This document shows, one piece after another, positions 2,276 through 60,371 of a stretch of 64,000 nucleotides of DNA. Below the pieces are notes generated by a model, which was not told where the DNA came from, made no database searches, and saw only the letters and a program-made list of their open reading frames with translations. The DNA comes from Macrostomum lignano. Its lineage: Eukaryota. Position numbers and translations under genes: made by a program. The DNA lies in the NCBI GenBank assembly GCA_002269645.1, contig NIVC01000953.1:62001-126000 (forward strand), read 5' to 3'. Within the stretch, counting starts at the first letter, position 1; each line of letters starts with the position of its first letter.

Positions 2276-3355
2276 GCGTAGAGAACCTGGACTCGGGCGT
2301 CGGCGTGTACGCCCCGGACGCGGAGGCGTACTCGGTTTTCGCGGACCTGTTCGACCCGATCATCGAGGAGTACCACGGCGGCTTCAAGCGCACCGACCGG
2401 CACCCGCCGTGCACGCTGGGAGACGCCAGCGAGTTCGGAGACGTGGACCCGGAGGGAAAGTACGTGGTGTCCACCAGGATCCGGTGCGGCAGGTCGCTGA
2501 GAAAGTTCCCGTTCAACCCGAACATGACGGAGGGGCACTACAAGGAGATGGAGGATCTGGTGTCGGGCACTCTGAAGGGCATGACGGGAGAGCTGAAGGG
2601 CACGTTCTACCCGCTGACCGGGATGACGAAGGAGGTGCAGCAGCAGCTGATTGACGACCACTTCCTGTTCAAGGAGGGCGACCGGTTCCTGCAGAAGGCG
2701 AACGCGTGCCGCTACTGGCCGACGGGCAGGGGCATCTTCCACAACGACAGCAAGACGTTCCTGGTGTGGGTGGGAGAGGAGGACCACATGCGGATCATCT
2801 CGATGCAGAAGGGCGGCAGCATCAGGGAGGTGTACGGCAGGCTGGTGAAGGCGGTGAACGAGATCGAGAAGCGGATGGAGTTCAGCCACGATGACCGGCT
2901 GGGCTTCCTGACGTTCTGTCCGACGAACCTGGGCACCACGATCCGCGCCTCGGTGCACATCAAGCTGCCGCGGCTGTCGGCGGGAGGCCAGGAGGCCCTG
3001 CAGCGGGTGGCCGACCGGTTCCAGCTGCAGGTGCGCGGGTCCGCAGGCGAGCACTCGGAGGCGGTGGGAGGCCTGTACGACATCTCGAACAAGGAGCGCA
3101 TGGGCCTGACGGAGTTCGAGGCCGTCGGCAAGATGTACCGCGGCATCGGCGAGCTCATCAAGATGGAGAAGGCGCTGGAGCGGGGCGTCGACCCGGAGGT
3201 GGTGAAGTACGTTGAGGACGGGTTCGCCAAGCTGCAGGCCAGCGACTCGTGCCACTCGCTGCTGAAGAAGCACCTCACCAAGGAGGTGGTGGACCGGCTG
3301 AAGAACCTCAGCACGCCGTCCTTCGGCTCCACGCTCAAGGATGTCATTCAGTCAG
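2276..3355 (+). CDS. Arginine kinase repeat exon A (1080 nt, 360 codons)
   Basis: ttcccag|GCGTAGAG acceptor; CAGTCAG|gtgat donor; open frame 2230..3372. Confidence 0.92.
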
Positions 3356-6300
3356 GTGATATTTTACTCTGAATTGGAATTCATATAGTAATTTTTTTTG
3401 TTATTTACCTATGGCAATATGGGATGAGCACAGTAAGAAGTTTGTTGGCATTAACGTAGGAAATGAAAGTTAGCTGAAATTTTCATCATAAGGAAATGTG
3501 CCTCTCCATTGCCAATCAAATCTAACCTAAGATTGGACACCAAGAGCTTACAATTACACTTTTCGTAAATTAGGATTCTATATAATAATTGCTTCAACGC
3601 TTCTTAATCCGAGGTAGTTGTAGTCTAGTGGGTAGAGCATCGGACTCACGACGAAGGTCCGGTGGTTCGATTCTCGACCCACTGGGAACAATTTGTGTGC
3701 TTGAGCAAGACACTTAACTCTACATTGCTTCAGTTCACCCTGCTGTAAAATTGGTGCCAGCATGTGAGAGTCGCCCCTGAAAGTCGCCATACCCAGTGAG
3801 TCGCCCGTTAGAGTCGCCCCACGTCCCCAGTGAGAGTCGCCCCACGTCCCCAGTGATTGTCGTCCCACATCCCCAGTGAGAGTCGTCCCACATTCCCAGT
3901 GATTGTCGTCCCACATCCCCAGTGAGTATCGTCCCACATCCCCAGTGATTGTCGTCCCACATCCCCAGTGAGAGTCGCCCCACATCCCCAGTGATTGTCG
4001 TCCCACATCCCAGTGAGAGTCGTCCCACATCCCCAGTGATTGTCGTCCCACATCCCCAGTGAGAGTCGCCCCACATCCCCAGTGATTGTCGTCCCACATC
4101 CCAGTGAGAGTCGCCCCACATCCCCAGTGATTGTCGTCCCACATCCCCAGTGATTGTCGTCCCACATCCCCAGTGAGAGTCGTCCCACATTCCCAGTGAG
4201 AGTCGCCTCACATTCCCAGTGAGAGTCGTCCCACATTCCCAGTGAGAGTCGCCCCACATCGTCAGTGAGTGTCGCCCCACATCCCCAGTGAGAGTCGCCC
4301 CACATCCCCAGTGAGAGTCGTCCCACATCCCCAGTGAGAGTCGCCCCACATCCCCAGTGAGAGTCGCCCCACATCCCCAGTGAGAGTCGCCCCACATCCC
4401 CAGTGAGAGTCGCCCCACATTCCCAGTGAGAGTCGCCCCACATTCCCAGTGAGAGTCGTCCCACATTCCCAGTGAGAGTCGCCCCACATTCCCAGTGAGA
4501 GTCGAGTCGCCCCACATCCCCAGTGAGAGTCGCCCAAGATCCCGCACTCCCAATGTAGATAAAGCTCTTTAATAGATTGATTCTCTTGAACATAAAGTGA
4601 TATGCTTCAGATGCGGAAACAGTTGGAAGTCACTCGGAGCCATATCTGGTAAATAGGCAGGGTTAGGCAGCTCTTGGAATCCTGCAACTTTCACAGCAGC
4701 AGCCTTCGCGATCCTGCTGGAGTGAGCTGGTGCATTGTCGTGCAGCAGCGCCACACCGCGGGTCAGCATTCCTCGCCGATTTTCCTTGACTGCCTGGCGC
4801 AGACGAGCGATCAAGTCAGCTTAGTAGACCCCTGCGACTGTCTGCTTGTGCAGTAGAAAGTCCAGCAGCAACGGACCCTTTGAATCGTAGAAGACTGTCA
4901 GCATTATCTTGCCAGCAACGCTTGCAGTCCTCGCCTTCAGAGGTGCTGGTGATCCAACTGGCAGATAAATCGTGGATTGGATTCTGGATCGTGGTGGTCT
5001 GGATCCACGACGTCTCATGCCGCGAGCTCCCTGACTTTGATGCGGCGAATGTTTTCAGCCGTGACAGCCGCGTCCACATCGCAGATCGTCTTCGAGCGAT
5101 GTACGACTGCGTTTGAACTGGGCTGCCCAGCATTTGATGCTGCGGTATGAGGGGGCAGCCCCAGCATACATATCAGCCATGTGACTGTGAATTTCTGCAG
5201 GCTTTGAGCCCTCATGCCTGATGTAGACTTTTGGAACAGTTATGTGCTGGAGTTTTGGAGGTTTAATGTTTAGGGATTTTCGTCAGGCTCAGATGAAACT
5301 TTCGTAGTGCCCCTCGTAGTTCTCTCCTTCTCTAGTACAATATTTTTAATTGTCAATGAAACTAGGTGTTTACAGGCCTCTGATTCTAAGGCTTCGTCAA
5401 TCTTCACTGAGCCTTCAAACTCAATCAATGATTCATAGCATTTTTCTCAGCTGCTATTCACTTCCTTTATCCCCTTCCTCTTCCCAGGCGTGGAGAACCT
5501 GGACTCGGGCGTCGGCGTGTACGCCCCGGACGCGGAGGCGTACTCGGTGTTCGCCGACCTGTTCGACCCGATCATCGAGGAGTACCACGGCGGCTTCAAG
5601 CGCACCGACCGGCACCCGCCGTGCACGCTGGGAGACGCCAGCGAGTTCGGAGACGTGGACCCGGAGGGAAAGTACGTGGTGTCCACCAGGATCCGGTGCG
5701 GCAGGTCGCTGAGAAAGTTCCCGTTCAACCCGAACATGACGGAGGGGCACTACAAGGAGATGGAGGATCTGGTGTCGGGCACTCTGAAGGGCATGACGGG
5801 AGAGCTGAAGGGCACGTTCTACCCGCTGACCGGGATGACGAAGGAGGTGCAGCAGCAGCTGATTGACGACCACTTCCTGTTCAAGGAGGGCGACCGGTTC
5901 CTGCAGAAGGCGAACGCGTGCCGCTACTGGCCGACGGGCAGGGGCATCTTCCACAACGACAGCAAGACGTTCCTGGTGTGGGTGGGAGAGGAGGACCACA
6001 TGCGGATCATCTCGATGCAGAAGGGCGGCAGCATCAGGGAGGTGTACGGCAGGCTGGTGAAGGCGGTGAACGAGATCGAGAAGCGGATGGAGTTCAGCCA
6101 CGATGACCGGCTGGGCTTCCTGACGTTCTGCCCGACGAACCTGGGCACCACGATCCGCGCCTCGGTGCACATCAAGCTGCCGCGGCTGTCGGCGGGAGGC
6201 CAGGAGGCCCTGCAGCGGGTGGCCGACCGGTTCCAGCTGCAGGTGCGCGGGTCCGCAGGCGAGCACTCGGAGGCGGTGGGAGGCCTGTACGACATCTCGA

Positions 6301-9300
6301 ACAAGGAGCGCATGGGCCTGACGGAGTTCGAGGCCGTCGGCAAGATGTACCGCGGCATCGGCGAGCTCATCAAGATGGAGAAGGCGCTGGAGCGGGGCGT
6401 CGACCCTGAGGTGGTGAAGTACGTTGAGGACGGGTTCGCCAAGCTGCAGGCCAGCGACTCGTGCCACTCGCTGCTGAAGAAGCACCTCACCAAGGAGGTG
6501 GTGGACAGGCTGAAGAACCTCAGCACGCCGTCCTTCGGCTCCACGCTCAAGGACGTCATTCAGTCAGGTGAGTGGCGCACCTTTCTAGATATCGGCTTCA
6601 AGGATGGGTTTGAAACTCGAGCCCTAGCATTATTTTGAGCCTATTCGTGATTAGGGCTCATAACTTGGGTTTTTCACTCTGTCTAGCTCTGCACGCAATA
6701 GGTCGCTGCACCTGTTCGGCCCCTAATCACTAGCTGGCTGGCTTTTGTGCATAAAAGCCAATGCGTCTCGCTAATTGGCGCCTATTGCACTCGCTCGGCT
6801 GGCGGAACAGCTCAAGATTTTGACTTCGATTTGCGCCGGCATTGTTTTCCTGTCTGTCTGTGCGAGTGCAGTTAGCCTACCTGTTGTATCTTGTCTAATT
6901 GTAGCGTTTCTACCTGTGGGCTAGGTGTATGCAGATTGTGCATGTCTGCGTCACGTGACACTAGCCTTGCATTTTTGCTATTATCTGCGGAAGAATAGAA
7001 ATGCTTTTAAGTATAGCTCTGGAATCAGATTTCATTTTGCATCAAAAGTTGCAATATGTGTGTTATACCTGTCCTGATGGTGTGTCGCCTCATACAGTTT
7101 GTCTCACCTGATGTGTCTCCTGACATGTCTCACCTGATGTGTCTCCTTACATGCCTCACCTGATGTGTCTCATATGCCTCACCTGATGTGTCTCATATGC
7201 CACACCTGATGTGTCTAATATGCCTCACCTGATGTGTCTCCTCACATGTCTCACCTGATGTGTCTCATATGCCTCACCTGATGTGTCTCATATGCCTCAC
7301 CTGATGTGTCTAATATGCCTCACTTGATGTGTCTCCTCACATGTCTCACCTGATGTGTCTCATATGCCTCACCTGATGTGTCTAATATGCCTCACTTGAT
7401 GTGTCTCCTCACATGTCTCACCTGATGTGTCTCATATGCCTCACCTGATGTGTCTAATATGCCTCACTTGATGTGTCTCCTCACATGTCTCACCTGATGT
7501 GTCTCATATGCCTCACCTGATGTGTCTAATATGCCTCACTTGATGTGTCTCCTCACATGTCTCACCTGATGTGTCTCATATGCCTCACCTGATGTGTCTA
7601 ATATGCCTCACTTGATGTGTCTCCTCACATGTCTCACCTGATGTGTCTCATATGCCTCACCTGATGTGTCTAATATGCCTCACTTGATGTGTCTCCTCAC
7701 ATGTCTCACCTGATGTGTCTCATATGCCTCACCTGATGTGTCTAATATGCCTCACTTGATGTGTCTCCTCACATGTCTCACCTGATGTGTCTCATATGCC
7801 TCACCTGATGTGTCTAATATGCCTCACTTGATGTGTCTCCTCATATGCCACACCTGATGTGTCTCCTCATATGCCACACCTGATGTGTCTCCTCATATGC
7901 CACACCTGATGTGTCTCCTCATATGCTACACCTGATGTGTCTCCTCATATGCTACACTCATACATGCGCAACAGTCGGCCGAGTCGGCCGATCCGGCCGA
8001 CTGATTTGGCAGCCAACCAAGGAAGTCGCAAAAATGCCCACCCAAAAATACCCACGCAGTAGTACTAAGTAGCTGACAAGGCATTTTTGCCTGATAAGAC
8101 AGTCATAGTTACTCCCGCCGTTTACCCAAAGTTGCGTTAATTTTGCTTTAGGGTTTTTTACATGTAAGTCGCATTTTTGGCCAAAAACTACGTCGCATTT
8201 TTGTTAAAACTAAGTCGCACGGCCGACCGAATTTTGGACGTTGCGCATGTATGGCTACACTTACCTGATATTTCTAAATATCCCACTGACCTGAAATCCC
8301 TGCTGAGATCTCGTACCAGATTCCTCCGCGTGCGTACCCACTCGTGTATTTTCATCATAAATCTCGGTTAGCATCCCAGCCTGACTCAGCTTATGCTTGT
8401 ATTCTACCAGAGCCTCTGCAGCAGAGCAAATAAAAAAGGATATTTTGCCACTCATCGCTACTGAGCCTCATTCCTCCAGATATTTTTGCATATTTTGAAA
8501 AAATAAGCTGCTTGCCTTTGCATCTTTGCTCAGCTAAATTGCTTTTATGGCGGGGATGACAAAGCCTGAACTGCTGCCCCAATGCAACTGTGGATAGCGT
8601 GACTCGCCCCCACCCCTATGCGCCATCGAGACCGGCTGCTTTCATAGCCAATTCCCTCGGAATTAGCATATTCGCTAAACACAGGATTCTCAATCAATTG
8701 AAATTGCTCCAACTCTTCTGCGAGATAATTTTACAAGAAATATTACTTTACCCTTCTCCAGAATTCCGTGACTAATCTACAGTTCACTTCCTTTATCCCC
8801 TCCCCCTTCCCAGGCGTAGAGAACCTGGACTCGGGCGTCGGCGTGTACGCCCCGGACGCGGAGGCGTACTCGGTTTTCGCGGACCTGTTCGACCCGATCA
8901 TCGAGGAGTACCACGGCGGCTTCAAGCGCACCGACCGGCACCCGCCGTGCACGCTGGGAGACGCCAGCGAGTTCGGAGACGTGGACCCGGAGGGAAAGTA
9001 CGTGGTGTCCACCAGGATCCGGTGCGGCAGGTCGCTGAGAAAGTTCCCGTTCAACCCGAACATGACGGAGGGGCACTACAAGGAGATGGAGGATCTGGTG
9101 TCGGGCACTCTGAAGGGCATGACGGGAGAGCTGAAGGGCACGTTCTACCCGCTGACCGGGATGACGAAGGAGGTGCAGCAGCAGCTGATTGACGACCACT
9201 TCCTGTTCAAGGAGGGCGACCGGTTCCTGCAGAAGGCGAACGCGTGCCGCTACTGGCCGACGGGCAGGGGCATCTTCCACAACGACAGCAAGACGTTCCT

Positions 9301-12300
9301 GGTGTGGGTGGGAGAGGAGGACCACATGCGGATCATCTCGATGCAGAAGGGCGGCAGCATCAGGGAGGTGTACGGCAGGCTGGTGAAGGCGGTGAACGAG
9401 ATCGAGAAGCGGATGGAGTTCAGCCACGATGACCGGCTGGGCTTCCTGACGTTCTGTCCGACGAACCTGGGCACCACGATCCGCGCCTCGGTGCACATCA
9501 AGCTGCCGCGGCTGTCGGCGGGAGGCCAGGAGGCCCTGCAGCGGGTGGCCGACCGGTTCCAGCTGCAGGTGCGCGGGTCCGCAGGCGAGCACTCGGAGGC
9601 GGTGGGAGGCCTGTACGACATCTCGAACAAGGAGCGCATGGGCCTGACGGAGTTCGAGGCCGTCGGCAAGATGTACCGCGGCATCGGCGAGCTCATCAAG
9701 ATGGAGAAGGCGCTGGAGCGGGGCGTCGACCCTGAGGTGGTGAAGTACGTCGAGGACGGGTTCGCCAAGCTGCAGGCCAGCGACTCGTGCCACTCGCTGC
9801 TGAAGAAGCACCTCACCAAGGAGGTGGTGGACAGGCTGAAGAACCTCAGCACGCCGTCCTTCGGCTCCACGCTCAAGGACGTCATCCAGTCAGGTGAGTG
9901 GGCGCATTATCTACCTGAAACTACATGGCATTTAGTCTTGAACTAATTATTAATTTCCTGCATTCTGCTGGCTGTGCCATCCTAACTGCCGCCCTCCGCC
10001 GCAAATTGTCCAGCACCTGGGGCTCTCGAGTTACAGTCGAGCAGACCCTCCCCCTGCGGTGCCTACTCAAGCCGTTCCAACTACTTAGCTAATAGTGTGT
10101 GATGACGCCATTGAGTTTTAGTTTGCTTTGCCCTCTTATCACTTTGTATTCTGTCTGCAGTTCCATACCCCTGGGACTCTCCGTTGTTAAGCGGGTTTTT
10201 TTTTACCTTATATATATTTAACCTAGCACCTGGCTTTTCTTGGATTTCTGTTTATTGCCTTGCCTCACAGTCTCAGCCACTAAAGTGTGCTTCGAAGCTG
10301 TAGTGCAGTTGTGGTAGGATGCTATTTAGCATAATAGAATAATTTTGCTTTGCCAACCTCTCTGCTTCAAAGCTTTAGACTTGAAGAGAATTGAAATGCC
10401 TGCCTGCACCCGCTCAGGCTTAGGCTGGATTGGGTAAGCGATTCACTGAGCAGCAGGCCCTGCAGTGTCGTTGCCTGTTATTTTCCGGTCTCTCTCTCCC
10501 TATCGCACTGCTGTACTCTCTGTCCCGCATGTCTCTCTAGACTCTCCGCCCTTGTTACCATGGCAACCATTTCTATCAGCAGGGAGACTCTGTCTTTGCC
10601 GACCGACTGAGAAATATTCTAGGGCCAGTGGGCGAGTACCCATGCAGGTGTGTCTCATAGACGCTCTGTTTCACAAACTATTAAACTATAAACACTAACA
10701 ATATTGAGTGTCTGAGAATGCTTTACTTGCATTTTAATTTACTTTGTACAGTAATCGGCATTTCGATTAATGCAGAAATGCTCTTGGTTAAATAAAAAAT
10801 GTGACTAGTTCAAATATCATAGTGCTTATCCTATCGAATTCTCTAGTTGAAAATTTATTTACAAATATAGAATGTATCACTGAAAAATCATACTACTGAC
10901 AGTCTTTCACTAGTAATAACTTCCTGATTGTTAGAGATCAATTAATTAAAGGGGTACTGGCAATATTAGTCTTCATGCATGGGGGCATCGCAAAACCGAA
11001 ATATCACAACCCCGAAATATCACAAACCCGAAATATCATAACTCCAAAAGTTGTATTTTGGCTTTGGGATTTACGAATATGATATTTCGGGTTGTGATAT
11101 TTCGGGTTTGTGATATTTCGGGTTGTAATATTTCGGGTTGTGATATTTCGGGGTTGTGATATTTCGGGTTGTGATATTTCGGGTTGTGATATTTCGGGTT
11201 GTGATATTTCGGGTTTGTGATATTTCGGGTTGTGATATTTCGGGTTGTGATATTTCGGGTTTGTGATATTTTGGGTTGTGATATTTCGGGTTGTGATGTT
11301 TTGGGTTGTGATATTTTGGGTTGTGATGTTTTGGGTTGTGATGTTTTGGGTTGTGATATTTCGGGTTTGTGATATTTCGGGTTTGTGATGGTGACCCCAT
11401 TTAAGAGAAACAGACGTAAACGTTTCCATTGAATAATCTGTCTGCACGACTGTCTGTCTGTGTGTCTGTCTGTCTGTCACATCTGTTACAATTAACAATT
11501 CCACAAAATACCCCAGGCGTTGAGAACCTGGACTCGGGCGTCGGCGTGTACGCCCCGGACGCGGAGGCGTACTCGGTGTTCGCCGACCTGTTCGACCCGA
11601 TCATCGAGGAGTACCACGGCGGCTTCAAGCGCACCGACCGGCACCCGCCGTGCACGCTGGGAGACGCCAGCGAGTTCGGAGACGTGGACCCGGAGGGAAA
11701 GTACGTGGTGTCCACCAGGATCCGGTGCGGCAGGTCGCTGAGAAAGTTCCCGTTCAACCCGAACATGACGGAGGGGCACTACAAGGAGATGGAGGATCTG
11801 GTGTCGGGCACTCTGAAGGGCATGACGGGAGAGCTGAAGGGCACGTTCTACCCGCTGACCGGGATGACGAAGGAGGTGCAGCAGCAGCTGATTGACGACC
11901 ACTTCCTGTTCAAGGAGGGCGACCGGTTCCTGCAGAAGGCGAACGCGTGCCGCTACTGGCCGACGGGCAGGGGCATCTTCCACAACGACAGCAAGACGTT
12001 CCTGGTGTGGGTGGGAGAGGAGGACCACATGCGGATCATCTCGATGCAGAAGGGCGGCAGCATCAGGGAGGTGTACGGCAGGCTGGTGAAGGCGGTGAAC
12101 GAGATCGAGAAGCGGATGGAGTTCAGCCACGATGACCGGCTGGGCTTCCTGACGTTCTGTCCGACGAACCTGGGCACCACGATCCGCGCCTCGGTGCACA
12201 TCAAGCTGCCGCGGCTGTCGGCGGGAGGCCAGGAGGCCCTGCAGCGGGTGGCCGACCGGTTCCAGCTGCAGGTGCGCGGGTCCGCAGGCGAGCACTCGGA

Positions 12301-12430
12301 GGCGGTGGGAGGCCTGTACGACATCTCGAACAAGGAGCGCATGGGCCTGACGGAGTTCGAGGCCGTCGGCAAGATGTACCGCGGCATCGGCGAGCTCATC
12401 AAGATGGAGAAAGAACTCGAGGCGAAGTGA
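2276..12430 (+). CDS. Multi-domain arginine kinase (ATP:guanido phosphotransferase), 5'-partial; exons 2276-3355, 5488-6567, 8814-9893, 11517-12430; 1384 aa and at least 4 kinase domains in window
   Basis: AK motifs [46 protein letters not shown] in every unit; each exon is preceded by CCCAG, the first three end TCAG|GT, all introns phase 1 inside the Gly of QSG; only the last exon has a stop (ELEAK*). Confidence 0.9.
3613..4560 (+). mobile_element. tRNA-derived CORE-type SINE with internally expanded minisatellite
   Basis: A box TAGTCTAGTGG (3621-3631), B box GGTTCGATTCT (3664-3674), then TGTGTGCTTGAGCAAGACACTTAACTC..CAGTT..CTGTAAAATTGG (3694-3753) resembling the MIR/CORE domain; 3' limit approximate. 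Confidence 0.7.
3764..4536. repeat. 23-bp minisatellite CAGTGAGAGTCGCCCCACATCCC
   Basis: Direct tandem repetition with GAGAGTCGCC/GATTGTCGTC variants. Confidence 0.95.
4569..5318 (-). mobile_element. Degenerate, 3'-truncated mariner element
   Basis: Frameshifted fragments [12 protein letters not shown] and HDNAPAH...[10 protein letters not shown]; one mariner-type end TA-CGAGGGGCACTACGAAAG on - strand at 5318; no second TIR seen. Confidence 0.85.
5488..6567 (+). CDS. Arginine kinase repeat exon B (1080 nt)
   Basis: ttcccag|GCGTGGAG; CAGTCAG|gtgagt; translation identical to exon A. Confidence 0.93.
7073..7958. repeat. Minisatellite paralogous to 1-1722, with a 72-bp higher-order repeat
   Basis: CACTTGATG marker recurs every 72 bp from 7321 to 7825. 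Confidence 0.92.
7959..8253 (+). mobile_element. hAT-type MITE (295 bp)
   Basis: 14-bp perfect TIR CATACATGCGCAAC / GTTGCGCATGTATG; 8-bp TSD GCTACACT (7951-7958, 8254-8261); empty site in the paralogous intron near 1715. Confidence 0.9.
8814..9893 (+). CDS. Arginine kinase repeat exon C (1080 nt)
   Basis: ttcccag|GCGTAGAG; CAGTCAG|gtgagt; translation identical to exons A and B. Confidence 0.93.
10979..11400. mobile_element. Foldback/MITE-like element with 15-16 bp subrepeats (TGTGATATTTCGGGTT) expanded on the right arm
   Basis: About 3 units CCGAAATATCAC at 10993-11040 face about 20 inverted units at 11078-11390; ends ATGGGG..CATC(G/A)CAAA are roughly inverted. Confidence 0.6.
11517..12430 (+). 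CDS. Arginine kinase terminal exon D
   Basis: ccccag|GCGTTGAG; identical protein to other units up to IKMEK, then ELEAK-TGA. Confidence 0.93.
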
Positions 12431-15377
12431 GCGGCCTGGCTGGATTGAAGTCTTCAAGATTCCAAGATTGACTGCTGTAACGGCTAAATGCGAGCTTTGA
12501 AGACTGAAACTGTTAACACACTGTTCATTTCTCAAATCAAAACATTTCCTTCGTAAGCAAAGTTTTCTGTTAAATTTACACATTCTGAAAAAAAACTATA
12601 GTTAATTCTGGAATTAAATCATTAAAAACTGAGCTGTAGTGGCATTGCTATGCCTAGCCTTTATAGTTTCTCATACACTCTAAATTAAAATTTATACTCA
12701 ACGCACACGCAGATAGAAGTCTTGTTTTTTTCTTGTTTCCTAAAATTCTACTTTAAATAGTGTTGTAGGTTTTTTTGTCCTCTTTATATTAGCAGTGACT
12801 CATTTGAAAGTTTTTTGAAAACGTAGTTTCTGTTTCAGCTAAGTTCATAATCTGTTATAGTAATTAATGTCTCTTTTAGCACAGGTAAATAGAAATGGTT
12901 AGAGTAAATTTCTATTCTCCGCTCTAAGTAAATTATAGCTGCTGCTTAAAGTAATATATAATCATGCGCCTAGCTATTTTTGTTTAAATAATCAAAATAT
13001 ATTGTATAACATCGTAACACAGTTTCACTGTTTTGTTAATTTGATAAAGACGTCGCGAGAAGTTCTGTAACTCTCAAAATTATCGACATGTTGTGGCTTG
13101 CTTTTGGATTTAAGGTTTACTTTAAAGGATTTGGGAAGCGCCGTAACAATTGGCGACAATCGAGCAGCAGACAAGAGAGTGGACCCCTGAGCACGCACAT
13201 GTGTAATGTATAGTGCCTAGATTCTCGAGACATTCTCGTCATCGCATGTTCATGTAATGTACGGATATGTTATTACATGTATATGTATACGCTTTGGGAT
13301 TCATCCTCTGAGCAGAGGTGTTGACTCGCGCTACAAACGCTAGTATAGGTAGAATAAATGCGAACGCACAGTGAAAAGGAAACCAGATAAGTCTGCTGCG
13401 AGAGTTCAAAAGAATTGTATTACTTTTACTTTCTGTGACGGACTGACGGCTCGTCCGTCTGCCCTGTCAATTTATGTACTTTTGGTTTTGATTAATTTTT
13501 ATGATACACTTCTGTTCGTTTGCTCTATGCTAAAAATGAGTTGTCTCCGGGTAAGGTGGGTATCTGTGATTTATTTATTTCAGAAATGATACCATTGTTG
13601 AACCAAGGACTATATAACTAAGTGTTCCTAGTGGTCCTTGTGTTGAACTTTTAGTTCTTTGAGCAAGATAAGATCAATAAAAGCTGGGCAACATATTGTC
13701 TTAAAAAGAGAGCCAAAATAAAGCAGTGCTATTTTTATTTTATGTAGTTTCGTAACAGCTTTACTTACGGCATTTCTGTTTTCAATTGGAAGTAAAAAAG
13801 ATGGCCTTTTATAATATATTTTGTTTATAATATAATGACGCATTTTAAATGCTTGTTTCGTGATTTTGCAAGAAATGCAGCTTTCTATATTGTAAATGCC
13901 TACCCGCTGGGAAAAAACTGACTTACTGCGCCAGGTCGAAGAGCCAAGTAACCTGGCGCATTTGTCACCAACTTGGGCCATGGGTTGTTCGTATGTAAAA
14001 AAACAAAGTTTTAGTGGTATGCTTTTATGAAAGTAATTTAGTGTTCTGTAACAGTTATAAGTAAATAAAGATGTTTATTACATTTTACCTTCCAATAGGT
14101 AAAATCAAATAATTATCCAGTTACTGAGATCGGTGAATTTTTTAAAAAACTTAATCGTGCAAGTGATAATTAACGCGCGCGCGCGATTTGCGATCCGAAT
14201 GATCAATGAATATTTTATAGCTAACTTAAATTAAGCTTTGATTACTTGAAGAGTGTAATTCCATACATAATTTTGTTGTGAAATACGTAATTTGACAATT
14301 CATGAAAACTGAAAAGCACCATTTTTGTCTATACTGTCTACTTTTATATATATATAATACATTATTTATTGTTCACATCATTATCTTATTCGCAAAGCTG
14401 ACTTAAAGACCCTATGCATATAAAATACATCTTAAGTCTGTTAGCTTTGTCTCAAGATGCAAATATAACATTGCATTTAAGTATAATTGCAAAGCTGATT
14501 GTTCCTTATAACCTCTAGACAGAGTAATTTAATTTCATTACTGGGATAGATCATTGGAGCTGTTTATTCTATGTCATGTGTGTGAACCTAATGTATTTGA
14601 TATGCTTTTAAATTTTGAAAATATAAACCAGAGTAGATTTAAAGTGTAGGCCCCAAATGTTTAGATACTCGAATATAATTCAGTGTTGCAAAAAGATAAA
14701 AAGTAATTTGAACCTAAAAAGTGAAAATGAAATGGAAATGAAAAACTATATCGATGATAATTGTGGTATATATACATATATATGTATTATTAGTACTAAT
14801 TTACTACTAATATTAAATTGGGGCCTATTATCATTAGTATTAGTATTTATATATTTGGATTTACTATTATGTAGTGTTGCTGAGAAGTTGCTATTAGATA
14901 TGCAATAATTATGTATTGCATTGCTTATTGTATTGCAAATACTTTAGACACATTAGGACACTTTAATTAAAGCTATACTAGTTTGCCTAATCTTGTTCTT
15001 TGCTATATGTCGATATTTACAACGAAGTGTTGGTATTTATTGATGAATTCAAATTAGCTTTATGAAATTTTTAATACTTTTCTTAATGTATTTTAAATGC
15101 TAAAAGTAATGGCTTAACATGTTTAGAAGTTTAACATGTTTCTGTCTGTCTGATTATATGTTCATTGTCAAGTTGTGCTTCCTCTTTATTTTTTGCAAAA
15201 AATTTTTTGCTAAATATATAATTTAATATAATAAACAAATTCATCAGATGCAAACATTGTACAACCAATTATTTCCTTTAGATGTATACTATTCATTTGC
15301 TATAATTTTATATTGAAACACAAGTTTGATTTATTCACTATATTAATGTATGAATTGTCACATACTACCACCAGATA

Positions 15378-18300
15378 ATGTTTCATGGATGGTCAGTTCC
15401 AACTGACAAGAGAGTCAGCTACTGGACTCAGCGCCGTCGTCGATTGGCTAGTCAAGCTGCCTCTGGTGCTGCTCAGCAAGGTGATTCGGCGGCCCCTGAC
15501 TCCAATGTATTCTCTGAAGCAGCAGGTTCTTCCCGAAAACAATTCCGTAGGATGGAGGATAAGCAAAATTGTGGAACACCTATGTGGCCTGAGTTAGAGG
15601 ATGAGCATGAGTTAGAGCCAGAGCGTGAGCATGGTTTAGAGCCAGAGCGTGAGCATGAGTTAGAGCCAGAGCGTGAGCATGGTTTAGAGCCAGAGCGTGA
15701 GCATGGGTTAGAGCCAGAGCGTGAGCATGGGTTAGAGCCAGAGCGTGAGCATGGGTTAGAGCCAGAGCGTGAGCATGGTTTAGAGCCAGAGCGTGAGCAT
15801 GGGTTAGAGCCAGAGCGTGAGCATGGGTTAGAGCCAGAGCGTGAGCATGGTTTAGAGCCAGAGCGTGAGCATGGGTTAGAGCCAGAGCGTGAGCATAGTT
15901 TAGAGCCAGAGCGTGAGCATGGGTTAGAGCCAGAGCGTGAGCATGGTTTAGAGCCAGAGCGTGAGCATGTGTTAGAGCCAGAGCGTGAGCATGGGTTAGA
16001 GCCAGAGCGTGAGCATGGTTTAGAGCCAGAGCGTGAGCATGGGTTAGAGCCAGAGCGTGAGCATGGGTTAGAGCCAGAGCGTGAGCATGGGTTAGAGCCA
16101 GAGCGTGAGCATGAGTTAGATGGGTTGGAGCAACCGCAGCAGGAGTCTCATGTGGATGGCGAGCTGGAGCCAGAGGACGTGATGGTTGCAGTTTTTGTCT
16201 CGGATGAGTCTTCGACTGCAGACACAGACAGCTTTGTCGAAGAAATGTCAGAGCCAGAACGGACAAACGAGGAGCCACTTGATGATCCGGCAGATGATCC
16301 CGAGCCCGCTGGGATGGGTGCTGCATTGTATCCCGAGTGCCGATCGACTAAATTACAGTGCGCTATCATCTTGGCCGAGTGTTCAGCGAGGTTGGGACTG
16401 TCTCGGGCTGAGACCAGCGATTGGCTCCGAGCCAGCGAATGTCTGCTTCCACCGGGCACAACATCGTTTAAGAGCAGCTACGACCTCTGGCGGCACTTCC
16501 CTCGGCCTCGCATCAGCCAGAAGTTCATTTACTGCAGTGAGTGCAGCAATGAGCTGGAAGAAGGATTAGCCTGTCAATCATGTGACGCGACAACAAAGAT
16601 TGACTTCATGGTCTTTGACAACTGCGTGCTGTTTTACAATCTAATGTTCATGAGTGCATCACGTTCCCCATTGACTGCACTGCCGATGGCTCCCATAGTT
16701 CGATGGCGAACAGTACCATGTACCGTTCACTGATTGATCGATTTGGCAGGGAGCGTCTGGAGCGTAAGACTGACCTGACGTATTCTCTGTCTATGGATGC
16801 GTTCCCATTGTTTTCAACTAGTCCCTTCAGCATCACACCTGTGTATCTCACCATAAATGAAATGCCACGTGACTTGCAGCTTACCAATTCAGTACTTGTG
16901 GGGCTGTGGTACGGCAACGGCAAAAAGGCCAATTGCAATTTGTTCCTGCCAAAGGTAATTGATGCACTGAATTCGATTGCAGAAGTTGGCTTCATTGTGG
17001 TACGCGAGGGAATTGAGCAACGTATGTATATGCACCCATTGAAGTTTCTGATGGACGCCCCTCAGCGTGCGGATGCTTTAAAGCTGCAGCAGTTCAATGG
17101 GATGCATGGGTGCGACAACTGCTACCATCAGTCTTTCCCTATTCCAGGACGAGAGGCAGCTCGATATTACCCTGTGCACTGCCCTGTCGAAGCAGAGATT
17201 TGCTCAACGCTTCTTGACTATGGATGCCAACCGCAAGAGAATTTGCTACGCTCTGCATCGGACACCTTCCAGTTGGCCGAGTCTGTGAGTGAGCAGCGCA
17301 TGCGGCAGCCGCTCCTCGGCGTGAAGGGATTATCTTGCTTGAGCCAATTACGAGGCTTCGATTTTATTGTACAAACCCCGCCCTGTTCGTTGCACGCGCT
17401 TTATCTGGGTCTGCAGCGCTGGCTCATGCGCGTGCTGTTCCTGCCATCAACAGACAAAGAGCGCCCTAAGTTGCAGCGCTTTGACAGCCCAAATTTGCAC
17501 CACATCCTCACAGAGGTAGACGTTGCTGTCAAAGCCGTCGTGCTGCCGAGTGCTGCGGTCCAACGCACCCCGGCGCGTTCGCTGTGTGACCTTAAGCATT
17601 TCAGGGGTCACGAGTACCAAGTCTGGCTGTTAGTTCTTGGACCACTGGTTCTTCGTCTCTATGTTGACGACATTCTGTACGACGCCGTCGTGATGCTCTC
17701 CAGTGCCTGTTATTGGCTCACACTGCCTGGAGCTCCACAGATGGAAGTGGAACGCGCGCAACATTCCCTAAGTGTTGCACAGGATCTGTTCAAGCGTCAC
17801 TTCGGCGAGTCGTTTCTCACGTACAACTCTCATCAAGTTTTCCACCATCTAGTTGCCGCTGTGATCAACTTCGGGCCACTGGGGGATCTGAGCGCAGGAA
17901 TTTACGAAACATGCCACCAGAGGCTGCGATCGATGATTCATGGATGCCAAAAAATGGACGTAGAAATTCGAAACAGAATCAGTCGGCGACTAGGCATGCT
18001 GCAGCTGAAAGAGACACTACCTGCAGAGATGAGGCTGCAAATCCGTGAAGCGCAACGGCGCCCGGTACGGAAGACTGCGGCAGGAATTGAATTTTCCGGT
18101 GCGAACCCTGCCAAACTGGTTAAAGCTATCATTCCAACTTCAATGGGGCGCTTGCAAGTCCAATGCTTCCGTAGGGATCGTAGAATCCGGCCATCAAATG
18201 CATTCTTGCAATTCAAACACCCAGTTAACGGTGGCAATGCCTACGGTCGAGTTGAATGCATCAGCCTACAGAACGACGAAATTATTCTGACGCTCAAGGT

Positions 18301-18529
18301 CCTTCCGACAGTTGCACTTGCTGACTGTGACCCATCGCAGAAGTACGACGCTGAACATCAGGGCTGCACTGTTGGACATATTCGTGACTTCCATGCCGAT
18401 GTGAACCCATTTGATGCAGAGGGTGAAGGGGAAGTCGTGCTCATTGCTGCCACTGCCATTACGGCTCATTGCGCTGTCACTCGTCGGCAGCTGGCTATTC
18501 TGCCCTGTATTCAGTCTGCATCATCGTAA
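15378..18529 (+). CDS. EnSpm/CACTA transposase (about 1050 aa) split by one frameshift near 16617-16620 (ORFs 15378-16733 and 16703-18529)
   Basis: CxxC..CxxC (YCSEC..ACQSC); SMDAFPLF..INEMP..GLWYG; LMDAPQR..QFNGMHGCDNC; LHALYLG; FRGHE; SAGIYE match the Transposase_21/EnSpm pattern. Confidence 0.85.
15603..16106 (+). repeat. Coding 24-bp minisatellite, (EHGLEPER)x21, inside the transposase N-terminal ORF
   Basis: 504 bp = 21 x 24 bp, in frame. Confidence 0.95.
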
Positions 18530-27000: not shown

Positions 27001-30000
27001 GATTAGGAGATGGGGAAGAGACTAGGGGGAGGATTAAGAGATGAGGAAGAGACTAGGGGAGGATTAGGAGATGGGGAAGAGACTAGGGGGAGGATTAGGA
27101 GATGGGGAAGAGACTAGGGGGAGGATTAGGAGATGGGGAAGAGACTAGGGGAGGATTAGGAGATGGGGAAGAGACTAGGGGGAGGATTAGGAGATGGGGA
27201 AGAGACTAGGGGAGGATAAAGAGATGAGGAAGAGACTAGGGGGAGGATTAGGAGATGGGGAAGAGACTAGGGGGAGGATTAGGAGATGGGGAAGAGACTA
27301 GGGGGAGGATTAGGAGATGGGGAAGAGACTAGGGGGAGGATTAGGAGATGGGAAGAGACTAGGGGAGGATTAGGAGATGGGGAAGAGACTAGGGGGAGGA
27401 TTAGGAGATGGGGAAGAGACTAGGGGGAGGATAAAGAGATGAGGAAGAGACTGTGGAGAGGATTAGGAGATGGGAAGAGACTATTGAGAGGATTAGGAGA
27501 TGGGGAAGAGACTAGGGGGAGGATTAAGAGATGAGGAAGAGACTAGGGGGAGGATTAGGAGATGGGGAAGAGACTAGGGGGAGGATTAGGAGATGGGGAA
27601 GAGACTAGGGGGAGGATAAAGAGATGAGGAAGAGACTAGGGGGAGGATTAGGAGATGGGGAAGAGACTAGGGGGAGGATAAAGAGATGAGGAAGAGACTA
27701 GGGAGAGGATTAGGAGATAAAGAAGAGACTAGGGAGAGGATTAGGAGATGGGGAAGAGTCAATAGACAATGGAGAGGATTAGGAGATGGGAAGAGAATAT
27801 GGATAGGATTAAGAGATGGGGAAGAGACTAGGGGGGAGAGGATTATGAGATTGGGAAGAGACTAGGGGAGAGGATTAAGAGATGAAGAAGAGACTATGGA
27901 GAGGATTAAGAGATGAAGAAGAGACTGTGGAGAGGATTAGGAGATGGGAAGAGACTATTGAGAGGATTAAGAGATGAAGAAGAGACTATGGAGAGGATTA
28001 AGAGATGAAGAAGAGACTATGGAGAGGATTAAGAGATGAAGAAGAGACTATGGAGAGGATTAAGAGATGAAGAAGAGACTATGGAGAGGATTAAGAGATG
28101 AAGAAGAGACTGTGGAGAGGATTAGGAGATGGGAAGAGACTATTGAGAGGATTAAGAGATGAAGAAGAGACTATGGAGAGGATTAAGAGATGAAGAAGAG
28201 ACTGTGGAGAGGATTAAGAGATAAAGAAGAGACTATGGAGAGGATTAGGAGATGAAGAAGAGACTATGGAGAGGATTAAGAGATAAAGAAGAGACTATGG
28301 AGAGGATTAAGAGATAAAGAAGAGACTATGGAGAGGATTAGGAGATGGGAAGAGACTGTTGATATTAGAAAGGGGATTCTAAAGAGAGGTAGGGGTTAGA
28401 CTTGAAAAACGAAATGGAAGATACTTAAGCCTGCAAATCCAGTTACAGCAGATTAGAGATTATCTCGATCTGCCAATTCCAGGCCAGCCCACTGGTTACC
28501 AACGCTGCCGGTCAGACCGCCTTTGACCTGGCCTGCTCAGGCGGTCACTCGGACACAGTGGCCGTTCTGCTGCCGGCCTGTCGCGGCTTCCTAACCGAAG
28601 TGGTCAGCTTCACCGATTGCTCACCTCTGGAGGAGGCCGCACGCGGCGGTCACGCCAATGTTGTACAGCAGCTACTTGAGGCCGGATTTCGCGTCAACGC
28701 TAGGAGCGGCTGCGGCGACGGCAGTGCGTCGGTAGGCGGCACGGCGCTGCACGCGGCTTGCGCTGGACTTCGGCATTCCACTGTACAGTTGCTGCTGTCG
28801 GCCGGAGCCAACCCAGCTGCCAGGGACTGCTCAGGCAGGACCGTTGTGGAACTGCTGCAGTCGTTTGGCTCCCCTGAGCACCTGCGCCTAGCCGAAGATG
28901 TCGCCTGTCGGGCCGAACTAAACAGCAGTCGTCGAGACTCGAAAGCCACCGCCACCACCGGCGCTCAGCAGCAGCCACCGCCGCCGCGACCTCCGCCGCC
29001 TCGGTCTCTACTGGTGGGCGACGACAGCGAAGAAGGTCGTTCGGCATCGCCAACACCTACTCCAAGGCCAAGATTATCCGCCCAGTTGCAGCAGCAGCAG
29101 GCAGCGCCTGTACCAAAACGACGCTCGATGCTTGGCGCTAACAGCTTGCATGGTCCAGCTGATTCAACAACTTCGGCTGCCGGTCAAATGCAGCCTTCAG
29201 CTCGGCCTCGCCAGCAGCGCGCCACTATCATGCTGTTGCCGCCGTCAAAGGCGTCAACTGGTGTTCAGCCTCCGAAGCGCCCTCCGCCGCCTCCGCATCT
29301 TCGCGGATTGACATTCAACGAAGAGCAGCAGGCGTCTGGGCAACAGCAGCAGCCTGAGGTTTGATAGTTTTCTATTTTCCGAAATGGCGCCCCTCAACAA
29401 AAAATTCGCCCTTTAAATAAAATGGCGCCTCTCTTAAACGAAATGGCGCCTCTCTTAAACGAAATGGCGCCTCTCTCAAACGAAATGGCGCCTCTCTCAA
29501 ACGAAATGGCGCCTCTCCTAAACAAAATGGCGCCTCTCTTAAACGAAATGGCGCCTTTCTCAAATGAAATGGAACCTCTCTCAAACGAAACGGCGCCTCT
29601 CTTAAACGAAATGGCGCCTCTCTTAAACGAAATGGCGCCTCTCTTAAACGAAATGGCGCCTCTCTTAAACGAAATGGCGCCTCTCTCAAACGAAATGGCG
29701 CCTCTCTCAAACGAAATGGCGCCTCTCTCAAATGAAACGGCGCCTCTCTCAAACGAAATGGCGCCTCTTTCAAATGAAACGGCGCCTCTCTCAAACGAAA
29801 TGGCGCCTCTCTCAAACGAAATGGCGCCTCTCTGAAATGAAATGGCACCTCTCTAATAATGAAGTGGCGCCTCTCTCAAATGAAGTGGCGCCTCTCTCAA
29901 ATGAAATGGCGCCTCTTTCAAATGAAACGGCGCCTCTCTCAAACGAAATGGCGCCTCTCTCAAACGAAATGGCGCCTCTCTGAAATGAAATGGCACCTCT

Positions 30001-31554
30001 CTAATAATGAAGTGGCGCCTCTCTCAAATGAAGTGGCGCCTCTCTCAAATGAAATGGCGCCTCTCTCAAATGAAATGGCGCCTCTTTTAAACGAAATGGC
30101 GCCTCTCTTAAATCAAATGGCGCCTGTCTCAAATTAAATGGCGCTCCTTCAAATAAAGTGGCGTCTACTCAACTGTCAAAAATTATTTTTTTAATAAATT
30201 TAATACCAATATTTCTAAATTTTTTACACAGGCTGCTGAAGAATATTCTGAACCCGAGCTGTTAATATCAATTGATGCCGATGGCAGTCTTGCTCCAATT
30301 ACTCCTTCGACATCAAGTGCCCGATCCTCTTCTAGAACGAATATTGACCTATTGACGATGTCCCTCGCTGGTGTGGAGAATCTTCCAGAGACTGCAGAGC
30401 CGTCCCCAGCAGCCAGGCAATCAGTTGCGTGTGGTGACCTACTAGATCTAACCAACTTCGACAATAGTACAAGGGCTCAATCCGCTGGGCAGGATTGGGA
30501 ACCAATCAGAATTGACCCGATTTCGCAGCCAATCGCCGAGGAGCTGGATAGTGGTAGCTGCCAGCCAATCAGCGACGACCATTTGGGGAGTAGCTCTCGG
30601 CTAAGCGCGGAGGAGATTGCGGGCCAGGAGTCCCACATAGTCTCAGATGAGACCAAAGAGGACTCTCAGCCAATCTCAGATGAGACCAAAGAGGACTCTC
30701 AGCCAATCTCAGATGAGACCAAAGAGGACTCTCAGCCAATATCAGAAGAGAACAAAGAGGACTCTCAGCCAATCTCAGATGAGACCAAAGAGGACTCTCA
30801 GCCAATCTCAGATGAGACCAAAGAGGACTCTCAGCCAATATCAGAAGAGAACAAAGAGGACTCTCAGCCAATCTCAGATGAGACCAAAGAGGACTCTCAG
30901 CCAATCTCAGATGAGACCAAAGAGGACTCTCAGCCAATGTCAGAAGAGAACAAGCAGGACTCTCAGCCAATCTCAGATGAGACTAAAGAGGACTCTCAGC
31001 CAATCCCAGATAAGCCCAAAGAGGACTCTCAACCAATCTCAGATGAGACTAAAGAGGACTCTCAGCCAATCTCCGATGAGACTAAAGAGGACTCTCAAAC
31101 CTCCAGCGGCACTCTCAATGCAGCATTAGAACCAATTTACGATGAACCAAGACGACATTCAAAGCCGCTCTCGGCCGAGCTGCAGTCTTTGTTAAGCCGA
31201 ACTTCTGTCGTGTCAACTTTGACCCCGGAGCCTGAGCCGGAGGCACCCTTGCCTAGTCCGAGGGGTCAGCGCGCCTCAACAGAGATGCTACTTGACTTGT
31301 CCTCACCTGAACAGGCGCCAACGACAACTGCTGAATCAACTTCTTCTCCTCCTCTGGAAGATTCTCCCCTGACAGACTGGAAGCCGCTGTCAATTGTTGT
31401 GCAGCCGCGTATAAGTCGGCAGAGCCGGTTTTCTGGCGCCGCTACGGCCTCGGTTGTGAGCTTGCCGCTGGTGCAGGAGACTAACAGGCTGGGCTCCCAG
31501 CCTGACTGCTGGCCCGCCCCAGTGACTGTTGGCGATTCCACTTTCTATTTGTGA
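22288..31554 (+). CDS. Ankyrin-repeat protein (ANKS1/CASKIN-like N-terminus, low-complexity C-terminus), 878 aa; exons 22288-22385, 26477-26560, 26644-26899, 28483-29358, 30232-31554
   Basis: All introns GT-AG with matching phases (2,2,0,0), total 2637 nt; ankyrin motifs TALHYA, TPLHVA, SPLEEAARGGH, TALHAA. Confidence 0.8.
22826..22954. repeat. Small degenerate foldback/MITE remnant
   Basis: GGTCACTTTGTCAAC (22826-22840) with inverted copies GTTGACAAAGTGACC at 22900 and 22940. Confidence 0.45.
23115..23803 (+). mobile_element. Degenerate Tc1/mariner (maT-like) transposase remnant in ankyrin-gene intron 1
   Basis: HTH-like MAKYEEIQKKIVEKL..IARQL, NPKRSIWQLARNF, DKKLFTID, ASVMVPGVITSDG..PPIFI..GVKINSATY across frameshifts; truncated before the second catalytic Asp. 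Confidence 0.75.
23995..24033. repeat. (TG)n microsatellite
   Basis: Direct. Confidence 0.95.
26909..28355. repeat. Purine-rich minisatellite, about 30 bp (GGAGATGGGGAAGAGACTAGGGGGAGGATTA), filling ankyrin intron 3
   Basis: Direct tandem repetition with a gradient of variants. Confidence 0.95.
29381..30165. repeat. 21-bp minisatellite AAACGAAATGGCGCCTCTCTC filling ankyrin intron 4
   Basis: Direct tandem repetition. Confidence 0.95.
30658..31098 (+). repeat. Coding 33-bp repeat (EDSQPISDETK) x13 plus partial unit in ankyrin-gene exon 5
   Basis: In-frame units with a DETK/DETK/EENK three-unit periodicity. Confidence 0.95.

Positions 31555-59763: not shown

Positions 59764-60371
<608 letters not shown>

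Follow-up and report, generated by a model that had tools for sequence, protein, structure and literature searches.

A Macrostomum locus that probably encodes a contiguous arginine kinase of at least four protein-identical units

Introduction

Multi-domain phosphagen kinases offer a textbook example of duplication followed by fusion in energy metabolism, with the characterised forms comprising two or three domains only, diverged from one another. The arginine kinase of two domains from the sea anemone Anthopleura japonica (PDB 4RF6-4RF9) comprises complete arginine kinase units that a short connection links head to tail, with an active site in each. Clams also have two-domain arginine kinases, and in the genes encoding the two-domain enzymes of Anthopleura and Pseudocardium, a 'bridge intron' reportedly separates the domains. 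In the flatworm Schistosoma mansoni, the two-domain taurocyamine kinase (PDB 4WO8) is likewise contiguous and derived from an arginine kinase, yet it uses another substrate, presents a divergent guanidino-specificity region and comprises two diverged domains. Sea-urchin sperm possess a flagellar creatine kinase that acts as the terminus of a phosphagen shuttle and reportedly repeats three complete units in one polypeptide; it is of the creatine kinase lineage, and its three domains have diverged.

No description of an arginine kinase with three or more domains was found in the literature searched, and the sole Macrostomum paper found to mention arginine kinase is a subtraction-library (gene-expression) screen from 2007. 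Here, an array of arginine kinase-encoding exons is described in a 64,000-nucleotide stretch of DNA (the window) and compared with these systems.

Results

The window opens within an intron, that is, inside a gene. Four coding blocks were identified on the + strand, each directly preceded by CCCAG, namely, internal exons 1 (2276-3355), 2 (5488-6567) and 3 (8814-9893), all of 1080 nt and phase 1/1, and a terminal coding exon (11517-12430; 914 nt) that encodes the catalytic part of the last unit and ends with MEKELEAK and a TGA stop codon at 12428-12430. Each block opens on the second and third bases of a Gly codon (G/GC), and the internal blocks close on the first base of such a codon (CAG TCA G/gt). 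The donor is GTGAGT in internal exons 2 and 3 and GTGATA in internal exon 1, with the latter departing from the M. lignano consensus of GT[G/A]AG. Each internal exon, uninterrupted by a stop codon, reads from PF00217 through an 8-residue tail/linker into the PF02807 region of the following unit. Internal exon 1 encodes the catalytic part of unit n (2276-3171), then ALERG as the linker (3172-3186) and finally, at 3187-3355, the N-terminal domain of unit n+1, while the linker codons of internal exons 2 and 3 lie at 6384-6398 and 9710-9724, respectively. When the four blocks were spliced in silico, a single open frame of 1384 codons and a stop was obtained, with at least two complete kinase units falling in one uninterrupted reading frame. 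Four in-phase blocks encoding the same protein represent a pattern beyond chance.

A tblastn search of the introns and the rest of the window revealed no other copies of the N- or C-part, such that the blocks have no private first exons there. Beyond the stop codon, a probable 3' UTR (12431-12700, + strand) contains ATTAAA at 12613, 12621 and 12684, assigned by consensus match only; the hexamer at 12613 is the first of poly(A) type on the + strand past the stop. No + strand poly(A) hexamer was found within 300 nt past any internal donor. An extension of a tblastn match into intron B (5370-5487, 'LQASDS') was considered as a relic N-terminal exon and rejected as a chance event, given the absence of nucleotide homology and the different codons used.

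The intron preceding internal exon 1 (intron A, 1-2275) is partial and filled with 23- and 26-nt minisatellites. Intron B (3356-5487; 2132 nt) harbours a minisatellite of 23 nt and has no relation to introns A, C and D, save for a polypyrimidine tract of about 35 nt at the acceptor. Intron C (6568-8813; 2246 nt) is homologous to intron A, carries related minisatellites and shares 99% identity with it across the 3' 565 nt. Finally, intron D (9894-11516; 1623 nt), containing a 15/16-nt minisatellite, is unrelated to introns A, B and C, and its acceptor tract (...aaaataccccag) is weaker than those of the others. The exon-to-exon spacings are unequal, at 3212, 3326 and 2703 nt. In the gene encoding P0003, a single-domain M. 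lignano paralogue, the sole intron interrupts the same Gly codon in the same phase.

Over their shared length, the four copies encode identical protein, with nucleotide identity among them being 99.35-99.78%. All nine variable nucleotide sites are synonymous (eight third-position changes and one CGG/AGG difference), an outcome with a chance probability of about 2e-6, or 7e-5 were the changes all transitions. Variants are common to different exons in a mosaic pattern, and GC3 of the exons is 94%. Every copy is thus under purifying selection. As the five of these sites that fall within the linker/N-part segment of the internal exons are all synonymous, this segment appears to be translated in the kinase frame.

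These results bear on a first-pass annotation of the same DNA, which had described four blocks, three of 1080 nt, with AG/GT borders, phase 1 within a Gly codon and a stop only in the last; the match was exact, the sequence at the internal junction included. The internal exons had been said to encode the C-part of one unit and the N-part of the next, and the frame indeed runs through in all three. Likewise, the four domains described as identical in sequence have matching translations and differ at synonymous sites only. With the first base of the window falling in partial intron A, the gene begins before the window, as had been proposed. The broader claim, that of one gene with at least four head-to-tail arginine kinase units and one exon per repeat, is supported by the frame, the phases, the tblastn search and the synonymous-only differences.

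The fold of the kinase units is beyond doubt. PF00217 and PF02807 alternate along the array, and a spliced two-unit piece matched these families with 502 and 155 bits, respectively, in two stretches each. The unit shares 69-73% identity with arthropod arginine kinases and 81% with single-domain P0003, with E-values of 1e-160 to 1e-170 being obtained against the crystallised arthropod enzymes. In an alignment with 11 arginine kinases, D62, S63, G64, Y68, R124, R126, R193, E224/E225, R229, C271, R280, H284, R310 and E315 are invariant, as is the reactive cysteine motif CPTNLGT. We take these positions to be the arginine kinase substrate and catalytic residues, with the catalytic glutamates in Limulus numbering presumably being E225 and E314 and the phosphate-binding arginines R124/R126, R229, R280 and R309. 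The guanidino-specificity region is of the arginine type and without deletion (NLDSGVGVY at 60-68), with D62 paired with R193 of EGDRF. Judged by sequence, the units belong to the arginine kinase type of the phosphagen (guanidino) kinase family (EC 2.7.3.3), and arginine, the substrate first suggested, is also that predicted by the identity to arginine kinases, the E-values and the invariant residues.

Among PDB entries, the Anthopleura enzyme was the top structural match (4RF6; E 2e-214), with about 340 residues aligned in both domains, followed by the Schistosoma enzyme (4WO8; E 7e-198) and then by single-domain arthropod arginine kinases. The two domains of the Anthopleura enzyme are not alike, whereas at least four identical ones are encoded here, and the inter-domain connection between equivalent aligned positions is 18 residues long, as compared to 10 in 4RF6. 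Unlike in the bridge-intron genes, the C-part of one unit and the N-part of the next share one exon, with no intron at the unit junction; as a difference in gene architecture, this is not a criterion for protein class.

Three-domain kinases are predicted in two other animals, namely, Lineus longissimus (XP_064653124.1; 1060 aa) and Macrobrachium nipponense (XP_064105360.1; 2589 aa), with the latter combining ankyrin repeats, three arginine kinase units and a Dpy-30 motif. Both share 51-52% identity with the unit described here and comprise three N+C units, yet these units have diverged. The Lineus gene contains the same phase-1 intron, after KSG, but each of its units is split by several introns, and bridge introns lie precisely at both domain junctions (after MERELG and LEKECG). 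ORFs with four PF02807+PF00217 units were found in protist transcriptomes, including those of Polykrikos kofoidii (EP00927_P011276; 1816 aa) and Mallomonas annulata (EP01041_P005882; 1803 aa, with a PH domain), with four-domain MMETSP, JGI and Logan entries being of 1687-2144 aa. These non-animal kinases, all transcript predictions only, share 28-36% identity with the unit of the window and have diverged domains. As such, the earlier view that the array goes beyond known forms holds relative to characterised enzymes but not relative to predictions, namely, the three-domain animal and four-domain protist kinases. On these comparisons, an animal gene with at least four identical arginine kinase-type domains and no bridge introns looks new.

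The gene product was missing from the protein collections searched, with no transcript or protein match being obtained. Exact look-ups of the ORFs over internal exon 2 and the terminal exon returned no match, nor did those of ten guessed products, collapsed single-domain forms included. A search of metagenome contigs with the 38-nt fusion junction yielded 0 matches.

Discussion

The exons described here probably correspond to the 3' part of a single cis-spliced gene of M. lignano, or of a near relative, encoding a contiguous arginine kinase of at least four units that arose through tandem fusion. Cis-splicing would join the exons head to tail at the phase-1 intron conserved within the Gly of DVIQS-G-VENLD, giving a product with four or more complete units, each of about 40.3 kDa, or at least 161 kDa in total. 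An N-terminal helical domain, a catalytic domain and all of the residues for substrate binding and catalysis would be present in each unit, which would thus be expected to transfer phosphate reversibly between ATP and arginine. The predicted product is most likely a giant (at least 160 kDa), multi-headed energy-buffering enzyme, with the domain number of the mature form being one that we infer from the exons. Such an enzyme, for which a role in cilia, sperm or muscle had been suggested in the first-pass annotation, would increase the number of catalytic sites on each molecule and for each mRNA; it may also diffuse more slowly, be anchored or show cooperativity between domains, as in the sea-anemone enzyme with two domains.

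Such a gene could have originated in the seamless fusion of tandem two-exon arginine kinase genes, with the stop codon, the intergenic spacer and the initiator Met being lost. As a result of these losses, the tail MEK-ALER-G would continue directly into VDPEVV, which comes after Met in canonical arginine kinases. The fused C+N exon may then have been multiplied by unequal crossing-over in the minisatellite-rich introns, with gene conversion confined to the exons holding the copies uniform. At 1080 nt, the repeated exons are long for internal exons, a point that counts against a giant enzyme. Moreover, very high identity between adjacent domains reportedly promotes misfolding and is disfavoured in natural multidomain proteins, such that a chain of 100% identical neighbours would be unusual.

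This general disfavour is one reason to consider that, although the fused exons are real, the main mRNAs skip internal exons or start inside the array, via an internal promoter or a spliced-leader acceptor, to yield kinases of one to n domains, with the 40 kDa form possibly predominating. Since the internal exons are all phase 1/1 and encode the same protein, any subset would stay in frame; the exon 1 donor is, moreover, non-consensus. An in-frame ATG is also present that, were a transcript to begin in exon 3, would specify an N-terminus closely resembling the one of P0003 (MSKCPLAVTG-VDP). Arginine kinase mRNA is trans-spliced to the spliced leader in this lineage (the 3' 22 nt of the leader of M. 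lignano stand at the start of L001), as are the transcripts of 30% of M. lignano genes. Still, the internal copies are all free of non-synonymous change, which routine skipping could hardly explain. In addition, polypyrimidine tracts are stronger at the internal acceptors than at that of the terminal exon, and the linker region lacks a pyrimidine-rich tract before any in-frame AG. We thus consider such a range of products to be unlikely, albeit with a real chance of being correct. Trans-splicing could also act on a tandem array or operon of single-domain genes, with each block entering its own mRNA through a private first exon or the spliced leader, given that M. lignano has many operons resolved in this manner and that a good acceptor precedes each block. 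Blocks 1-3, however, lack a stop codon, and the 57 N-terminal residues are encoded nowhere but at the 3' end of the preceding block. The spliced leader, which ends in ATG, would be joined to the block acceptors out of the kinase frame (AT G/GC GTA), reading ATG GCG TAG in blocks 1 and 3. Furthermore, without N-part and stop a kinase could not function, whereas purifying selection acts on the N-part codons, rendering separate genes highly improbable.

It is also very unlikely that mis-assembled repeats in a hidden-polyploid genome inflated what is really a gene of one or two domains. The near-identity of introns A and C over 565 nt would fit such an artefact, as would the highly repetitive and polyploid nature of the M. 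lignano genome, as described in one report (PMC10468722). At the same time, the spacings differ, and a single internal exon already proves the C-to-N fusion. Because introns B and D are unrelated to the others and synonymous variants specific to individual copies form a mosaic across the exons, the copies should represent distinct loci rather than a collapsed or inflated repeat. As to the fate of the protein, the chain could be a precursor cut at the linkers into 40 kDa monomers: identical head-to-tail coding repeats with synonymous-only differences resemble polyubiquitin genes, and cleavage would sidestep the misfolding problem. The characterised two- and three-domain kinases are, however, intact (4RF6 and 4WO8 being intact two-domain chains), ALERG/VDP contains no recognisable protease site, and we know of no such proteolytic processing in phosphagen kinases. 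Cleavage is accordingly scarcely credible. A contiguous, multi-domain arginine kinase thus remains the preferred reading.

The likeness to polyubiquitin, an analogy without homology, extends to concerted evolution of repeats that are identical in protein; the repeats of polyubiquitin, however, measure 76 aa, are not separated by introns and are released as monomers by cleavage. More speculatively, the locus may be an enzyme counterpart of polyubiquitin, that is, an open-ended array of identical 40 kDa arginine kinases kept uniform by concerted evolution and GC-biased gene conversion and either read out as a giant poly-enzyme or tuned in length by skipping of its phase-symmetric exons, a possibility we consider less likely than not. 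Four modules lie in the window, with possibly many more upstream. Were this so, the usual rule that neighbouring domains diverge to fold safely would be broken.

A contiguous kinase of this kind would be the first animal case with at least four units, and is the only case found with protein-identical units and fusion without a bridge intron. The locus would capture duplication, fusion and amplification early on, with the copies still homogenised, and would do so in M. lignano, a laboratory model amenable to RNAi, in situ hybridisation and transgenesis. The independent folding and action of identical tandem catalytic domains, the relation of chain length to retention in cilia, sperm or muscle, and the contribution of gene conversion and minisatellite-rich introns to intragenic amplification would all become testable. 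Such loci are prone to mis-annotation or collapse in short-read transcriptomes.

Two further candidates were rejected. A dinoflagellate-type tandem array was ruled out by the canonical GT-AG introns, the animal arginine kinases being nearest and the presence of an M. lignano-like transposon; a retrotransposon RT/RNase H ORF in the window shares 95-100% identity with many Macrostomum lignano proteins. Antisense ORFs of 343-363 aa, present over every exon, were dismissed as genes, being by-products of a GC3 of 94%.

Organization of the poly-AK gene

A survey of ORFs and repeats, together with direct inspection, revealed a tandem arginine kinase (AK) gene on the forward strand, here termed poly-AK, comprising three internal exons of 1080 nt (exon 1, 2276-3355; exon 2, 5488-6567; exon 3, 8814-9893) and a terminal exon of 914 nt with TGA at its end (exon 4, 11517-12430), with block coordinates and border details being just as described in the first-pass annotation. 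Each of the four blocks follows a CAG acceptor, preceded in exons 1-3 by a strong polypyrimidine tract. The donor is GTGAGT in exons 2 and 3 and a non-consensus GTGATA in exon 1. All borders are in phase 1 and fall within one Gly codon (CAG TCA G/gt ... ag/GC GTN GAG), such that every internal exon is phase-symmetric. Joined, the four blocks yield one uninterrupted reading frame (1384 codons and a stop), along which Pfam domains PF00217 (catalytic; C-part) and PF02807 (N-terminal helical; N-part) alternate. Each internal exon encodes about 300 catalytic-domain residues and the tail MEK-ALERG, after which comes the next unit's N-part of 57 residues (VDPEVVKY...DVIQS(G)).

A 360-aa test unit, consisting of N-part and C-part in natural order, matched crystallised AKs with E-values of 1e-160 to 1e-170 and was 69-73% identical to arthropod AKs upon alignment. 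The best PDB matches were two contiguous two-domain enzymes, namely the AK of Anthopleura (4RF6) and the taurocyamine kinase of Schistosoma (4WO8). Across an alignment that included 11 AKs, NLDSGVGVY (D62-Y68), R124/R126, R193, E224/E225 and R229 were invariant, as were C271 in CPTNLGT, R280, H284, R310 and E315; these are AK substrate and catalytic residues, with NLDSGVGVY being the arginine-type specificity loop. The active-site residues are complete in each unit. Given these matches, identities and invariant residues, arginine, already proposed as substrate in the first-pass annotation, is a well-founded prediction at the level of sequence.

Single-domain relatives

The closest named AK is a single-domain M. 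lignano protein (P0003; 81% identity), encoded at a separate locus adjoining tetraspanin genes. Its gene contains one intron of 78 nt, found at the identical Gly codon and phase as the poly-AK introns. A related single-domain AK (protein P0004, transcript L001; Logan SRR7428099) is 83% identical. Poly-AK is a paralogue of these; its product was not found in the protein collections searched. Positions 1-22 of L001 (CGAAGACTCAATTTATTGCATG) correspond to the 3'-terminal 22 nt of the M. lignano spliced leader as published (SL; PMC8629364), followed by a 20-nt 5' UTR and then ATG GTC GAC. Because L001 begins with the SL 3' end, AK mRNAs of this lineage are SL trans-spliced.

One fused gene or separate genes

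The kinase blocks could instead be transcribed as separate single-domain mRNAs, through separate first exons or trans-splicing, as the first-pass annotation had considered. A tblastn search of the whole window with the unit returned only four C-parts and three fused N-parts; since the N-part occurs nowhere else in the window, the blocks lack private first exons there. A 'LQASDS' match in intron B (3356-5487) was rejected as an N-part remnant, being without nucleotide homology. SL trans-splicing onto each block does not work either. With ATG at its 3' end, the M. lignano SL (PMC8629364) is out of frame when joined to the kinase-block acceptors (AT G/GC ...), and the SL's own frame reads ATG GCG TAG in blocks 1 and 3. 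Moreover, all three internal exons read from C-part into subsequent N-part with no intervening stop. The four copies vary at only nine nucleotide sites, five of them in the linker/N-part segment, and all nine differences are synonymous, as are 23% of random single-base changes in the kinase sequence (probability of 9/9 about 2e-6, or 7e-5 if all are transitions). Purifying selection in this frame therefore acts on each copy, fused N-part included. In a consensus scan, no forward-strand poly(A) hexamer was detected within 300 nt past the internal donors, and three ATTAAA hexamers lie downstream of the stop codon (12613-12689), a distribution that slightly favours one fused gene. Thus, several independent features, namely open junctions, the lack of private N-parts, synonymous-only variation, the SL frame mismatch and hexamer positions, say that the kinase blocks are one fused gene.

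Mis-assembly of the array, likewise raised earlier, is unlikely, as judged from the assembled sequence. Start-to-start spacings of the exons differ (3212, 3326 and 2703 nt). Introns A (1-2275, partial) and C (6568-8813) are 99% identical across their last 565 nt, yet introns B and D (9894-11516) share nothing with these or with each other, except for some 35 nt at the acceptor. The synonymous variants, too, are mosaic, with exons 1 and 3 matching at 5' sites 5, 62 and 68, exons 2 and 4 at sites 62 and 68, and exons 2 and 3 at 3' sites 920, 1020 and 1067, a pattern that typifies gene conversion, or else unequal exchange, among real copies.

The kinase exons have a GC3 of 94%, as compared to 72% for the P0003 gene, 78% for transcript L001 and 50-69% for the window's other ORFs, consistent with either GC-biased gene conversion between the repeats or a very strong codon bias. 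Antisense stop-free ORFs of 343-363 aa over every kinase exon result from this GC3 and were dismissed as artefacts.

Origin and predicted product

Canonical AKs begin M-VD... and finish ...EK(S/E)L... in the alignment. In poly-AK, the internal tail MEK-ALER-G directly abuts VDPEVV and is equal in length to the terminal tail, MEK-ELEAK-stop. As such, all that fusion would have removed is the stop codon, the spacer and the downstream tandem copy's initiator Met. The fused C+N exon may then have been amplified between ancestral-intron copies, giving A-[C+N]n-C. Between equivalent aligned positions, the inter-unit connection is 18 residues, versus 10 in the crystallised two-domain AK.

Cis-splicing probably yields a product with at least four domains. 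The simplest expectation would be a polypeptide of 161 kDa or more (4 x 40.3 kDa, computed), containing at least four independently folding AK modules that would buffer ATP via phosphoarginine. With the window beginning inside an intron, additional units may lie upstream, as the first-pass annotation had anticipated. That shorter isoforms predominate seems rather improbable. Still, because the internal exons are phase-symmetric, exon skipping or internal starts could generate 1- to n-domain forms, and the non-consensus exon 1 donor would be in line with this. Identical neighbouring domains promote misfolding, which also counsels caution regarding the full chain.

Comparison with known multi-domain kinases

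An exhaustive HMMER search covering 1.84 billion representative proteins, combined with Pfam counts and source names, shows multi-domain phosphagen kinases to be commoner than the literature implies; the best 120 matches were considered, and short poly-AK fragments in transcript assemblies, ranking lower, could escape the search. Among these matches, predicted three-unit kinases come from Lineus longissimus and Macrobrachium nipponense, and the Pfam domain count proposed earlier uncovered four-unit kinases (1687-2144 aa) in transcriptomes of protists, including Polykrikos and Mallomonas. All are distant from poly-AK (28-52% identity). No published AK with more than two domains was found in the literature searched. 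The earlier view that poly-AK surpasses known forms thus holds for characterised enzymes only, given the three-unit animal and four-unit protist predictions. What appears to be new at this locus is a unit count exceeding that of any other animal AK among the matches considered, together with units identical in protein, a single exon for each repeat and the absence of a bridge intron. By contrast, the Lineus three-domain gene has several introns per unit, with a bridge intron located precisely at each of its two domain junctions; Anthopleura and clam AK genes contain bridge introns as well.

The M. nipponense protein (XP_064105360.1; P0121), predicted to be 2589 aa, carries its three AK units along with ankyrin repeats and a Dpy-30 motif. 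Since Dpy-30 motifs are found in proteins of cilia and flagella, this one would be a hint that crustaceans have multi-domain AKs anchored to the axoneme. An ankyrin-repeat exon with a Pro/Gln-rich tail is found in the present window (28558-29364, forward strand), yet a link to the kinase is not indicated, as the kinase stop codon lies 16 kb upstream. Three JGI/Logan environmental transcripts (P0007, P0011 and P0023) encode close relatives of the kinase (71-74% identity) fused to an N-terminal peroxiredoxin domain (PF00578, PF10417), an architecture of which we know no published description.

Other features of the window

The kinase introns are largely minisatellite arrays (12-1785, 3732-4584, 7025-7983 and 11060-11395) with periods of 23 and 26 nt; in the last intron, the period is 15/16 nt. 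Elsewhere, arrays of this kind occupy much of the window (e.g., 29372-29848, 34779-35793, 36282-37089, 43286-44984, 50391-51774, 52223-54517 and 58783-60399).

On the forward strand, two long overlapping ORFs (15378-18529) encode 451 aa, including a Cys-rich motif and a 24-nt coding repeat (EPEREHGL) present in about 30 copies, and 608 aa with no Pfam match; together, these are possibly one frameshifted transposon-like gene. Also on this strand are an ORF with 11-residue DETKEDSQPIS repeats (30352-31554), which follows the ankyrin-repeat exon, and a Ras-like GTPase exon (35698-36177), followed downstream by an acidic low-complexity ORF (38443-39186). The GTPase exon, with only a weak Ras-family Pfam match, is taken to be RABL6-like on the basis of sequence; its best named match is an uncharacterised Helobdella protein (53%), and no M. 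lignano match was seen in the collection searched. On the reverse strand, an intact ORF of 609 aa (55516-57345) encodes the end of a reverse transcriptase domain and RNase H of the non-LTR retrotransposon type, and matches dozens of M. lignano proteins at 95-100% identity, which places the window in M. lignano or a very close relative. Several of these proteins resemble chimeric gene models into which a copy of the element was incorporated. The same strand carries a mariner/DDE_3-type transposase fragment (47913-48326; PF01359, PF13358).
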